Source of the DNA: Isurus oxyrinchus
Taxonomy: Eukaryota
Direction of reading: 5' to 3'
Length of the DNA stretch: 64,000 nucleotides
Assembly (NCBI GenBank): GCA_026770705.1
Contig: JANJGN010000071.1
Span: 1,550,001 to 1,614,000, forward strand
The first letter of the stretch is position 1. Each line of letters opens with the position of its first letter. Both the position numbers and the translations under genes were made by a program. The notes beneath the pieces are model-generated. The model saw only the letters and a program-made list of their open reading frames with translations, searched no databases and had not been told where the DNA came from. This document shows, one piece after another, positions 2,789-59,372 of the stretch.

Positions 2789-3070
2789 ACGCACCACGGA
2801 ATCTCTCAATTACTTCTCCAGATATGATGAACGCTTCATCGATCAATATAATTGAGGGGAATTCTGCAGTGATAATCTGCTCTGTCGAGAGCTTCCCAGC
2901 TTCTAACCTGATGTGGCGACATCTTAATGTCCCAATGAACAGAACAAGTTCCAACAATGAGCTGTGGTTGGTGATTCCTCACGTTACATCCAGGGACACT
3001 GGAGACTATCAGTGTGTGGCAGAGAATGAACATGGAGCAGTGGAGGGGTCCATAACCATTACTGTGGAAT
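2789..3070 (+). CDS. Gene A C2 Ig exon (activating-type Siglec-like; upstream exons not seen in window)
   Basis: 282 nt, ag|AC...T|gtgagt, open, near-identical to gene D repeats; upstream intron 2655-2788 matches 54490-54625. Confidence 0.82.
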
Positions 3071-56600: not shown

Positions 56601-59372
56601 CTGTGATGGGATTCACACCCAGGGCCCCAGAGCATCACCCGGGGCCTCTGGAATACTAGCCCAGTGACAATACCTCTCTGCTACCGCTTCCCCTTAGTGA
56701 AGCCAGTCTTCCACTCAGAACTCCCCCCATTATCACCGTCATGAATCACTAATTAGTCTAACATTCCTGTCTGCTCTTCAACACAGCTGATTGGCTAATC
56801 TGATTCAATCTGATTGGTGTTCATTCCCTGTTCAATGTTTAAGGAATCACCAATCACTCGTCCTCTAGTTATTCTCCTGCCCACAAGAGGGAACATTCTC
56901 TGTCTACCCAGTCAATCAAAACCTTTCATCTAAACCTAGTGGTGCTTGAGTATATAGTCGGGAATCCAGGGCAATGGAGCCTCAGGAGAAGAGATGGAAA
57001 CCCTGTGAGGTGGAACGTCACTGAGGCCATCCGAGTTGAAGCGACTTTTGGAGAGAATTCCAAGGCAAGATCTTCGAAGTTGAAGACTGGAATCCCTCAT
57101 GAGAGAAACAGAGTTTCAGTGAGATTGGTTGACTGACAGTGTTCACTGATGTCCGGGTGGGTTGTTGTGAAATCCATGGGCTCTATCTTGGTCGCGTTTA
57201 CAATTTAATGAGTAATGTGGCTGTGAGACCACAGTTTGCCTGTTAATTCACATGAGCTCATATTAATCCAGAATGTTAGGGTATAAGGTGGATATTGTAA
57301 ATTATTTTATCTTTCTGAGCTGGTTTAGTAAAGTTTATTTTTGTTTGTTTAAAAGCCATGGAATCTTGTAGCTCTATTCTCTTTGCAAGCGTCTTAAATC
57401 TCAAACCTCGTCTACTTGAAACAAAATATTATTGGTTCCTAACTGTAAATTACGAAAAAAATTGGGTGCCTGTTCCTCCATCAGCAACTCTTTAACCCTT
57501 TTATCCCTCCAAGTAATAAGATTTTGTAAATGTATTCATTCATGGGATGTGGGCGTCGCTGCCAAGGCCAGCATTTGCTGCCCATCTCTAATGTCCCGTG
57601 ACATAATCTCTGTAGCAGAGTAGAGACAATCATGATCACTCAGGATATTTGACATCTATCCACATGAGCAGCTTTGCCTTCCTTCTCTCTTTCAGTTATC
57701 TTACTCCCTTATTGAAGTTTCTAGCATGGTGAGAACTGGATGGTTTGCTCGGACATTTCAGAGGAACCACGTTGCTATGAGTCTGGAGTCACATGTAGGC
57801 CAGACCAGATATAGACGGCAGATTTCCTTCCCTAAAGGCCATTAGTGAACCAGATGGGTGTGTATGACAATCGATGATAGTTTCATGGTCTCCATTACTG
57901 AGACTAACTCCCATTAGTGTAAACAGAGTGAACAGTTTTCCATTGATCCCACCTTTCCCGTTCTCTCCGGTATTTTACACACTATTGCTCGATAATTTGA
58001 TTCTGCCAAGGACCCCTTGGAAAATCATGGACCCCAGTTAGACAACCGATGGAATAAGGAATCTCTTTGGATTCTCATTGTCTAAGGAATCTCTTCGGAT
58101 CCTCATTGTCGAAGGAATCTCTTTGGATCCTCATTGTCTAATGGATTATTTCTGATCCAAACTCCATATTGTTGTATTGTTGATTCCAATGCAGCATTGT
58201 AGACTGACTTGTCCCCAAGCTCAGCACTGACCCTACTCCAGCAGACACTGTGAAACACACTAACAAAGCGCCTCTAGCCTGAGCTCTGCATGTGTCGGAG
58301 GTGCCGCTGTGGTGGTTTCATGACTTTCAAAGATGCTGTTGTCATTTTTTTTGTTCAAACTGAACTGGGCCCCACATGAAGTGTTGATACCAGAAACCTC
58401 TTGTTCCCTGTCCTTCTGAAACATCTGTGATTCAACAGGATTCTGAAGATTTGCTGATAAGGGTCTTAAATTGTCTGATTGTTGATTGATACAACACAGG
58501 AGGAGCTCATGTGACTCATCGTGCATGTGCTGACTCTTTCCCAATTCCTCTCCAGCACCTTTCACACATCCCTGCAAAATTCCCTTCAAGTATTTATCCA
58601 GTTCCCCTTCTGAAAGTTCCTGTTGAATCTGCTTCCACCGCCCTTTCAGGCAGTGAGGCAATGGTCTCTCTCTGAGCTGCAACGTGCCCAGATTCCGTGA
58701 AATTTAAACTATGCAGCAGATCAGAGACACTCATCAGATAACTCAGAATATTTGACACCTTTACACCCAGTCAGCTTTGCCTTTCTTCTCTCTTTCAGTT
58801 ATCTTGCTCTCTTATTGAAGTATCTAGCAAGGTGAGAATGGACAGGAAGTGTGACACTGAACAACCTGTCTATTCTAGGAGCTGCTGTGTTGTCTTCATG
58901 GGAAGTTTTGAATAAAGGCAGCAAAGGACACAAATTTCAGGTCATTGCTATCGGAGACCTCACATTAGGATAGGCTTCATCCCCCAGTTTTTATCCCTGC
59001 TTCTCTACTCAACACATCAATCCCCATCGCTCACTGACCAACGTCCGACAGCACCTGAATTTCAAGATTCTGCTCTCGCTGCTACAAACCTGCCTATCCC
59101 TGTAAACTCCTCCAGCCCCTACAACCCTTCAAGACCACTGGTCTACTCCAATTCTGCTGTCAGACAGGGAGTCAGTGTACATCAGTGAGCACAGGGGTGA
59201 TGGGTGAACGGGACTTGGCGTGAGTTTGTACACTGGATCACTGCTGAATCAGTTCCCTATCAGAGCTCAATAAGAATGATCTTTAACAAAGACTATTAAC
59301 CATAAATCTGTCCGAGCTGACGATGATATTACCTTGCAGAAGTGACAGGAGGAAGTAAGATTTCCCGATCAT
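38950..59372 (-). CDS. Gene D: inhibitory Siglec-like receptor, 14 Ig domains (V + D2 + 12 C2), TM, ITIM + ITSM; 18 coding exons, ~1504 aa
   Basis: Hand-spliced GT-AG exons with compatible phases: 59372-59333, 56201-55836, 55464-55168, twelve 282-nt exons between 54489 and 42090, 41275-41179, 40299-40218, 39198-38950. Total 4515 nt, no internal stops seen. Two N gaps lie in introns of the array. Confidence 0.85.
39385..40008 (+). repeat. 33-bp minisatellite in gene D intron
   Basis: ~19 tandem copies. Confidence 0.9.
40218..40299 (-). CDS. Gene D cytoplasmic exon 1 (RKTATQERVSGTSDIALNPRSLSVKHQ)
   Basis: ttattgcag|G...CAG|gtacag; phase 2-0 links the TM exon to the terminal exon. Confidence 0.72.
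41179..41275 (-). CDS. Gene D transmembrane exon (RDSSKWTVGLFTAGIMLSVFLAGFFIFICVRK)
   Basis: tttttacag|...AA|gtaagt; 97 nt by line numbering, phase 1-2, uncharged hydrophobic helix. Not in the ORF track. The block at 41201-41210 should be re-read to confirm there is no extra base. Confidence 0.8.
42090..42371 (-). CDS. Gene D C2 Ig repeat exon R12 (membrane-proximal)
   Basis: 282 nt, open frame, AG/GT boundaries. Confidence 0.87.
43125..43406 (-). CDS. Gene D C2 Ig repeat exon R11
   Basis: 282 nt, open frame, AG/GT boundaries. Confidence 0.87.
44380..44661 (-). CDS. Gene D C2 Ig repeat exon R10
   Basis: 282 nt, open frame, AG/GT boundaries. Confidence 0.87.
45445..45726 (-). CDS. Gene D C2 Ig repeat exon R9
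   Basis: 282 nt, open frame, AG/GT boundaries. Confidence 0.87.
46512..46793 (-). CDS. Gene D C2 Ig repeat exon R8 (extra Cys: TSCYNEL)
   Basis: 282 nt, open frame, AG/GT boundaries. Confidence 0.87.
47567..47848 (-). CDS. Gene D C2 Ig repeat exon R7
   Basis: 282 nt, open frame, AG/GT boundaries. Confidence 0.87.
48629..48910 (-). CDS. Gene D C2 Ig repeat exon R6
   Basis: 282 nt, open frame, AG/GT boundaries. Confidence 0.87.
49675..49956 (-). CDS. Gene D C2 Ig repeat exon R5
   Basis: 282 nt, open frame, AG/GT boundaries. Confidence 0.87.
50762..51043 (-). CDS. Gene D C2 Ig repeat exon R4
   Basis: 282 nt, open frame, AG/GT boundaries. Confidence 0.87.
51967..52306. other. Assembly gap (others at 53083-53233 and 63713-63892)
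   Basis: N runs; the first two fall at GT-rich intronic positions of the exon array. Confidence 1.
52318..52599 (-). CDS. Gene D C2 Ig repeat exon R3
   Basis: 282 nt, open frame, AG/GT boundaries. Confidence 0.85.
53241..53522 (-). CDS. Gene D C2 Ig repeat exon R2
   Basis: 282 nt, open frame, AG/GT boundaries. Confidence 0.85.
54208..54489 (-). CDS. Gene D C2 Ig repeat exon R1
   Basis: 282 nt, ag|AT...C|gtgagt; APQNLS...CSVESFPASNLTW...DTGDYQCVAENEHG. Confidence 0.88.
54625..55045 (-). repeat. 33-bp minisatellite in gene D intron
   Basis: Tandem copies at the position equivalent to 2310-2660 in gene A. Confidence 0.9.
55168..55464 (-). CDS. Gene D Ig domain 2 exon
   Basis: 297 nt, phase 1-1. 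DFTDKPTIFPAEIIAGKRVDVSCTFNTTC...LTW...TSVLTLIP...HGHTLSCRV; the extra Cys is typical of Siglec domain 2 (inter-domain disulfide). Confidence 0.9.
55836..56201 (-). CDS. Gene D Siglec V-set domain exon
   Basis: 366 nt, phase 1-1. GSCVQIPCHYSYP...RTRLSGDLKDGDCSLIINNIRREDAGPYYFRIE shows the Siglec Cys pattern and the essential Arg (55897-55899). Confidence 0.92.
59333..59372 (-). CDS. Gene D leader exon (MIGKSYFLLSLLQ)
   Basis: ATG plus 40 nt to a phase-1 donor CAAG|gtaata; hydrophobic; homologous to 12639-12678. Confidence 0.8.

Follow-up and report, generated by a model that had tools for sequence, protein, structure and literature searches.

A Siglec-type receptor gene cluster in a shark, with a complete inhibitory gene and related copies that end in an arginine-bearing transmembrane exon

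A 64-kb stretch of DNA from the shark Isurus oxyrinchus (contig JANJGN010000071.1, positions 1,550,001 to 1,614,000; "the window" in what follows) contains, between positions 2789 and 59372, a series of related exons that encode immunoglobulin (Ig) domains. The window is likely part of a large, fast-evolving cluster of shark Siglec-type receptor genes, in which a complete inhibitory gene, gene D, is accompanied by duplicates whose transmembrane (TM) segment carries an arginine (Arg-TM). In known sets of this kind (Siglec-5/14, Siglec-11/16, LILRA/B and the KIR-S forms), a basic residue within the TM segment docks an adaptor, DAP12 or FcR-gamma, that contains an ITAM (immunoreceptor tyrosine-based activation motif). 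A first-pass annotation, made from the letters of the window, had proposed such a system here, with leader, V, D2 and C2 exons shared by genes that have two different tails. The shared exons were indeed found, at 85-97% nucleotide identity between the tail types. The paired reading, inhibitory forms and Arg-TM forms together, is supported at the level of the family; within the window itself, there is no activating copy that is demonstrably both complete and intact.

Gene D lies on the minus strand. When modelled exon by exon, it has a complete exon set with canonical splice sites and matching phases (Table 1). Its tail contains LFYANI, which fits the consensus of an immunoreceptor tyrosine-based inhibitory motif (ITIM), and TEYAQI, which fits that of an immunoreceptor tyrosine-based switch motif (ITSM). 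The two tyrosines are 24 positions apart (23 residues between them), and the layout, a membrane-proximal ITIM and a distal ITSM, is the one by which a CD33-related Siglec tail is recognized. The combination of an uncharged TM segment with an ITIM and an ITSM, which had been claimed for this gene, is thus present in exons 41179-41275 and 38950-39198. The junctions of the TM and the two cytoplasmic exons are the same as those in the RefSeq proteins P0004 of Cetorhinus maximus and P0018 of Carcharodon carcharias, whose identity to gene D over these exons is 85-90% and 73-90%, respectively. When the exons were compared with the window by BLAST, the inhibitory TM and tail exons occurred only once. 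The C2 copies that precede them are 93-97% identical in nucleotides, all are open, and their introns are CA-rich; across 13 C2 exons (the 12 of gene D and that of gene A), the ratio of nonsynonymous to synonymous change (dN/dS) is ~0.85 at a dS of 0.046. Judged from this sequence, the C2 run of gene D appears to be a set of recently amplified tandem exons. The predicted product would have 14 Ig domains, with a C2 copy number that two gaps in the array make uncertain.

The V domain of gene D matches the Pfam V-set (2.4e-12) and, above the cut-off, Ig_CD22, the CD22-type first Ig domain (1.1e-9). Its best 15 matches among solved structures are all Siglecs (4e-14 to 3e-10). Sialoadhesin leads at 4e-14, followed by MAG, Siglec-5, Siglec-8, CD33, Siglec-10 and Siglec-7; the scores of sialoadhesin and MAG are slightly better than those of Siglec-5, Siglec-8 and CD33, and those of CD22 and Siglec-15 are much weaker. 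The motifs YYFR (gene D) and YFFR (gene C) align with Arg97 of sialoadhesin, the F-strand residue by which Siglecs bind the carboxylate of sialic acid, and Trp2 is likewise aligned; Trp106 of sialoadhesin aligns with a Tyr in the shark domain. Siglecs have an unusual intrasheet disulfide between strands B and E where other V domains have the canonical B-F pair, and an additional V cysteine that forms a link to domain 2. The cysteines of GSCVQIPC and GDCSL, those of the B and E strands among them, have aligned counterparts in sialoadhesin and MAG, and Cys is absent from the shark F strand; the disulfides are predicted from the alignment. D2 of gene D, which has three cysteines, aligns with the second domains of MAG and CD33. 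Within the family, the F-strand Arg is present in 51 of 56 V motifs, and gene B, P0121, P0025 and P0002 are domains with Lys or Ser in its place. We infer sialic acid binding from this conserved Arg. By the definition that applies to sequences, the shark genes are Siglecs; a place within the CD33-related branch does not follow. The replacement of the F-strand Arg by Ser in gene B is also seen in the annotated Arg-TM protein P0121 of Scyliorhinus torazame (YHFSIEF), and these two may belong to a Siglec-like sublineage without the sialic-acid arginine.

BLAST of the exons against the window also located three copies of ectodomain exons on the plus strand, genes A, B and C. The Arg-containing segment ILILGIRAVIFL is encoded exactly at two places, 4801-4835 and 17233-17267, both of them plus-strand (chance expectation 0). 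The Arg exon that starts at 4775 encodes a hydrophobic span with a single Arg, followed by ERQTVTGSRQTV and a stop codon; Tyr is absent. This exon of gene A starts after an ag, and a GT..AG splice from 3070 to 4775 is possible, with a junction codon (T+AC) that preserves the frame; the joint that had been predicted here is therefore in phase at ag/gt sites in the DNA. BLAST of the exons found no leader, V or D2 for gene A in 1-2788, a segment that contains LINE (long interspersed nuclear element) fragments and a 33-bp minisatellite homologous to the D2-C2 intron of gene D. Gene B is a pseudogene in which a TGG codon of V has become TGA, the F-strand Arg has become Ser and D2 is frameshifted; its leader region is replaced, and homology breaks at 7337-8616. 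In gene C, 1 nt of the V exon is missing relative to genes B and D, and the resulting frameshift leads to a TAA at 13887-13889, before the donor. Unrelated sequence stands in place of the 5' half and the acceptor of the C2 exon of this gene. Genes A and C had been put forward as activating members. This holds for their 3' ends, since both have the terminal Arg-TM exon and a Tyr-free tail, but not for the genes as wholes: gene C has a frameshifted V and half of a C2, and for gene A the window contains neither leader nor V nor D2. Because the activating copies in the window are compromised or incomplete, working partners may lie elsewhere in the family. An arrangement in which the Arg exon serves as an alternative 3' end of gene D was considered and ruled out, since the two are on opposite strands.

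Transcripts of gene C were sought among contigs from four public runs placed on 12600-17400. Three of the runs, X6 (organism A) and X17 and X19 (organism B), were guessed to be RNA, and the fourth, X1, is DNA. Each of X6, X17 and X19 contains three GT..AG joints: 12678 to 13540 (leader to V), 13907 to 14766 (V to D2) and 15062 to 17207 (D2 to Arg-TM). The last of these bypasses the C2 remnant. None of the three joints is present in the DNA run X1 on 12600-17400. The first-pass annotation had named the lack of any transcript that joins Ig exons to the Arg-TM exon as an outcome that would speak against it; the 15062 to 17207 joint occurs in three probable RNA runs. This transcript evidence consists of contigs whose "RNA" label is a guess, and the sides of the D2-TM joint are only 21-30 letters long. 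Since the V-D2 joint places the acceptor at ~14766, ~9 nt upstream, the start of the D2 exon given in Table 1 (14775) is provisional. The RNA-type contigs are ~98-100% identical to gene C across V to D2. All of them have an extra C after 13865 that restores the V frame, and the restoring C is also found in 3 contigs of the DNA run X1 (~36% of summed depth). Gene C is therefore either a frameshifted copy or allele, with the RNA coming from a near-identical paralogue or from the other allele, or it carries a one-base assembly error.

Relatives of these genes were sought exon by exon. A search of 1.84 billion representative sequences gave 1479 matches, 33 of them below 1e-30, and the top matches are RefSeq proteins of sharks and rays. 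The closest proteins are from Cetorhinus, Carcharodon, Scyliorhinus, Mustelus, Chiloscyllium and Stegostoma, which agrees with the shark origin deduced from the letters: the source is a shark, and the proteins nearest to it are those of lamniforms. More distant relatives, at 33-45% identity, are present in rays, the sevengill shark, gar, paddlefish, arapaima and arowana. RefSeq shark models belong to the same family (66-93% V identity), and both tail types as well as multi-C2 forms are predicted in Carcharodon, Cetorhinus, Scyliorhinus, Chiloscyllium and Stegostoma. The names given to the family (Siglec-8/10/12/13/14, CD33-like, MAG-like and hemicentin-1-like) are labels that the RefSeq pipeline takes from best hits and do not denote orthology.

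The Arg-TM exon is used as a cassette in this family. It forms the C-terminus of at least 8 RefSeq proteins from four species: P0158, P0159 and P0161 (Carcharodon), P0160 and P0162 (Scyliorhinus canicula), P0121 and P0006 (S. torazame) and P0025 (Chiloscyllium punctatum). Searches with the cassette region, which work through a word index, gave 6 and 2 matches, so protein counts are lower bounds. In the RefSeq proteins, the cassette is joined either straight to D2, with a junction Asp as in the gene C prediction, or to C2, with a junction Tyr as in gene A. Its GIRA core, including the Arg, is invariant in all 10 sequences (8 RefSeq proteins and the 2 exons of the window), which represent 5 species and three shark orders. 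The Arg is at position 11 of a span of ~29 residues, and the surrounding hydropathy windows are at least 2.5. The cassette is also used by a non-Siglec Ig receptor, since P0175 of S. torazame (987 aa), annotated as "polymeric immunoglobulin receptor-like", has the same Arg-TM cassette at its end (86% identity over 77% of the query). Another kind of tail is seen in P0012 of the ray Pristis pectinata ("MAG-like"), which contains an ITAM-like motif of its own (YQEL, seven residues, YSEL) and would, by its sequence, add a third type of signalling to the family.

Comparison of the two tail types suggests that their parts have had different histories. Between the types, D2 is 98.9% identical and V ~80% identical in amino acids, and C2 is 94-97.5% identical in nucleotides; there is no cross-match between the TM/tail exons of the Arg type and those of the ITIM type in BLAST within the window. 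For genes C and D, dS is 0.027 in D2 and 0.235 in V, and the flanking introns are 96.8% identical on the D2 side vs 90.6% on the V side. Because D2 and V, together with their introns, diverge so unequally, a mosaic history is indicated, of the sort that gene conversion or exon exchange would leave. The dN/dS ratios give no sign of positive selection (0.44 for V of C vs D, and the value given above for the C2 copies). When 36 V domains were placed in a maximum-likelihood tree, proteins of the Arg type and the ITIM type came out intermixed. The tree requires 6 label changes, a number not below that for shuffled labels, and well-supported branches force at least 3; starred sister pairs consist of one Arg-type and one ITIM-type protein. 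The V of gene C groups weakly with Carcharodon Arg-type proteins and is 93% identical to P0159.

If these genes work as known pairs do, the ITIM and ITSM of gene D would recruit SHP-type phosphatases and so damp signalling. The Arg-TM forms would pair, through the buried Arg, with the acidic residue of an ITAM adaptor, and the form coupled in this way would activate the cell in response to the same kind of ligand as that bound by the inhibitory form. A broader proposal, for which we see the balance as even, is that elasmobranchs possess an old, hugely expanded paired Siglec-type system, no younger than the ancestor that lamniform, carcharhiniform and orectolobiform sharks have in common. In such a system, which would correspond in function to the mammalian CD33-related cluster although "fish" are said to be without such genes, the Arg cassette and the ITIM/ITSM tail would have been recombined again and again with rapidly diversifying V/D2/C2 sets, and inhibitory members of sialoadhesin length would have arisen by recent exon amplification.

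Several observations weigh against reading the window as part of a paired system. The V exon of gene C is frameshifted in the assembly, and ~64% of the DNA-run depth at 13865 is without the restoring C. Near-identical paralogues, and not the locus in the window, may be the source of the RNA-type contigs. The gene A joint from 3070 to 4775 is drawn from genomic splice sites and phase. No ITAM adaptor gene was found in the 64-kb window. Ligand binding and signalling are read from sequence and by analogy, and V similarity gives the CD33-related branch no edge over Siglec-1 or MAG.

Some of these points are also those expected if no pair works locally, that is, if gene D is functional, A, B and C have all decayed and the transcripts come from intact paralogues elsewhere. 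We regard this as a serious possibility, though a doubtful one. The four lesions of gene B, the frameshift and half-deleted C2 of gene C, the 2.8 kb upstream of gene A with LINE fragments and neither V nor D2, and the preponderance of DNA depth without the restoring C would all follow from decay. However, genes A and C have intact Arg-TM exons with 99.3% identity to each other, the leader and D2 of gene C are intact with good splice sites, and the close match of the RNA-type contigs to gene C extends across V to D2. The single-base gap at 13865 could be an assembly error or belong to one allele, and the loss of C2 leaves an in-frame form with two Ig domains, like that of RefSeq P0160-P0162. 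What the Arg-TM forms do is a separate matter. It is quite improbable that they are non-signalling decoys, ligand sinks or partners of some other membrane protein, as opposed to adaptor-coupled activators. Such roles would fit a window without an identified adaptor and an Arg-form tail without a motif, and the pIgR-like P0175, which ends in the same cassette, suggests that the cassette may be a general membrane anchor. Yet receptors that couple to DAP12 or FcR-gamma as a rule pair a buried TM Arg with the acidic helix of a partner, and an Arg in this position, invariant in all 10 sequences compared across three shark orders, would be costly unless it were paired with an acidic helix.

The ligand and the origin of the system can be questioned as well. 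A family that is Siglec-like in fold only, with ligands other than sialic acids, seems unlikely to us. The Siglec assignment comes from sequence, with binding inferred, the F-strand Arg is replaced by Lys or Ser in gene B, P0121, P0025 and P0002, and a Tyr occupies the position aligned with Trp106 of sialoadhesin; on the other hand, the Arg is retained in 51 of the 56 V motifs, Trp2 is conserved along with the unusual pattern of cysteines, and 15 of the 15 best solved relatives are Siglecs. The first-pass annotation had supposed an elasmobranch counter, evolved independently, to pathogens that mimic sialic acid; both the separate origin and this role are conjectural. It is somewhat less unlikely, but still not favoured, that the pairing is no shark invention and was inherited from a Siglec cluster of ancestral gnathostomes in which ITIM and charged-TM members were present beforehand. 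The relatives at 33-45% identity in rays, gar, paddlefish and osteoglossiform fishes point in this direction, as does the ITIM-plus-ITSM tail, whose layout is like that of mammalian CD33-related Siglecs. However, ITIM/ITSM-type motifs recur in the tails of many unrelated ITIM receptors, and no similarity of the shark Arg cassette to a tetrapod Siglec TM was seen, in searches that included no comparison aimed at it. The reading that we favour remains that of a fast-evolving shark Siglec-type cluster, with gene D as a complete inhibitory member and Arg-TM duplicates beside it.

This cluster resembles the primate pairs Siglec-5/14 and Siglec-11/16 in its near-identical ectodomain exons, in the contrast between an ITIM-type tail and a short tail with a basic TM (the shark inhibitory tail being ITIM plus ITSM), in the signs of sequence exchange between partners, and in its clustered, fast-evolving locus with pseudogenes. 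The shark cluster departs from the primate pairs in its Arg cassette, one conserved exon shuffled across numerous ectodomain sets and used even in a pIgR-like protein; in its inhibitory member, whose 12 C2 exons were amplified recently; and in its local activating copies, which are incomplete or damaged. Sialoadhesin (Siglec-1) and MAG (Siglec-4) provide the best solved matches to the V domain, with the Arg, Trp2 and the cysteines aligned, and a long C2 chain is shared with sialoadhesin. However, sialoadhesin lacks a signalling tail like that of gene D with its ITIM and ITSM, and the C2 domains of sialoadhesin are diverged, whereas those of gene D form a young tandem amplification (93-97% identity). 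Multigene clusters in which an ITIM form is set against a charged-TM form are also known from the skate MDIR, teleost NITR and LITR, and chicken CHIR families; their domains are of other V/Ig types and are not Siglec-like.

According to a study of teleosts, fish regularly have only Siglec-1, CD22, MAG and Siglec-15, and CD33-related Siglecs are absent from fish genomes; sharks are not mentioned (PMC7226832). Siglec proteins are mentioned in the whale shark genome paper only in a list of Ig-domain gene families that are traced to the emergence of jawed vertebrates (PMC8455134). A literature search outside subscription journals turned up no study of a paired Siglec-like family in cartilaginous fishes. 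The first-pass annotation knew of no description in cartilaginous fishes, and this stands as far as papers are concerned; it does not stand for databases, since RefSeq already annotates the genes as Siglec-8/10/12/13/14 and CD33-like. The shark Siglec-like pair is thus unpublished, yet already visible in public annotation.

Table 1. Exons of genes A to D and assembly gaps within the gene D array (positions in the window)
Feature	Position	Strand	Remarks
Gene A C2 exon	2789-3070	+	Intact; ag acceptor, gtgagt donor
Gene A terminal exon	4775-4914	+	Arg-containing TM, Tyr-free tail of 12-13 aa, stop
Gene B pseudogene	9203-10964	+	V 9203-9586, D2 10652-10964; without leader, C2 or TM
Gene C leader exon	12639-12678	+	Intact; joint 12678 to 13540 in RNA-type contigs
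Gene C V exon	13540-13907	+	368 nt; 1-nt deletion after 13865; YFFR arginine present
Gene C D2 exon	14775-15062	+	Intact; 98.9% aa identity to gene D D2; start provisional
Gene C C2 remnant	15386-15537	+	3' half only, without acceptor; skipped in transcripts
Gene C terminal Arg-TM exon	17207-17346	+	99.3% nt identical to gene A counterpart
Gene D last coding exon	38950-39198	-	LFYANI (ITIM), TEYAQI (ITSM), stop codon
Gene D first cytoplasmic exon	40218-40299	-	82 nt; phase 2 in, phase 0 out; junctions as in P0004
Gene D transmembrane exon	41179-41275	-	Uncharged helix VGLFTAGIMLSVFLAGIFIFICV; 90% identical to Cetorhinus P0004 and Carcharodon P0018
Gene D C2 array	42090-54489	-	12 exons, each 282 nt, open, ag/gt, phase 1-1; period ~1060 bp
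N run	51967-52306		Intronic, gene D array; donor of C2 copy 52318-52599 only 11 nt away
N run	53083-53233		Intronic, gene D array; donor of C2 copy 53241-53522 only 7 nt away
Gene D second Ig exon (D2, C2-set_2)	55168-55455	-	Three cysteines
Gene D V-set exon	55836-56201	-	366 nt; Siglec cysteines and YYFR arginine; Pfam and solved-structure matches
Gene D leader exon	59333-59372	-	MIGKSYFLLSLLQ, phase 1 out; same leader opens many shark RefSeq Siglec-like proteins

The window has a G+C content of 45.6% and a CpG observed/expected ratio of 0.31, a typical vertebrate value. It contains three runs of N, two of which fall inside the Siglec-like feature (2789-59372). Breakage of gene D exons by these two gaps was ruled out, since both begin past the gt donors, inside introns. 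No exon or reading frame crosses either gap in the gene D array; the flanking exons are complete and of phase 1-1. Because both gaps are intronic, only the C2 copy number of gene D is uncertain. The spacing of the C2 exons beside the gaps is 1556, 923 and 967 bp vs 1035-1255 bp across the rest of the array.

Repeats are abundant around these genes. Fragments of LINE-type reverse transcriptase flank and interrupt the cluster at 72-806, 37255-37749 and 61347-61628, all on the minus strand. Arrays of a 33-bp minisatellite, which produce long open frames in either orientation with repeats such as LSTDPPTVQHS, are located at 2225-2788, 11031-11948, 18568-19150, 39380-40010 and 54549-55050; their sites are D2-C2 introns and the regions 3' of TM exons, and they could act as substrates for unequal exchange. 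The 21-kb spacer between the convergent gene groups is occupied by a 37-bp tandem array at 22672-23748 and by a big block of short tandem repeats at 30900-34600, in which copies are offset by 20-30 bp in a pattern that returns every ~72 bp. The minus strand also contains, at 29560-29967, a fifth V exon of Siglec-like type that is more divergent. It is 32% identical to the gene D V in amino acids, matches the Pfam V-set at 3e-4, which is under the cut-off, and stops abruptly at ...VYYTQF, where YxFR is expected. A gag-like retroelement open reading frame (29031-29609, minus strand) starts where this exon breaks off, and the exon is for this reason probably a relic broken by insertion.

Paired Siglecs are a textbook case of a host-pathogen arms race in primates. 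The value of this window by itself is lower, since its activating copies are incomplete or damaged and RefSeq already includes the genes under names assigned automatically. At the level of the family, if the reading is true, a conserved, expressed set of shark Siglec-like receptors with ITIM and Arg-TM forms would mean either that the logic of paired receptors is as old as the base of the jawed vertebrates or that it had two origins. Such a family would also provide a natural system in which to study how activating and inhibitory partners are reshaped by exon shuffling and by gene conversion between them.

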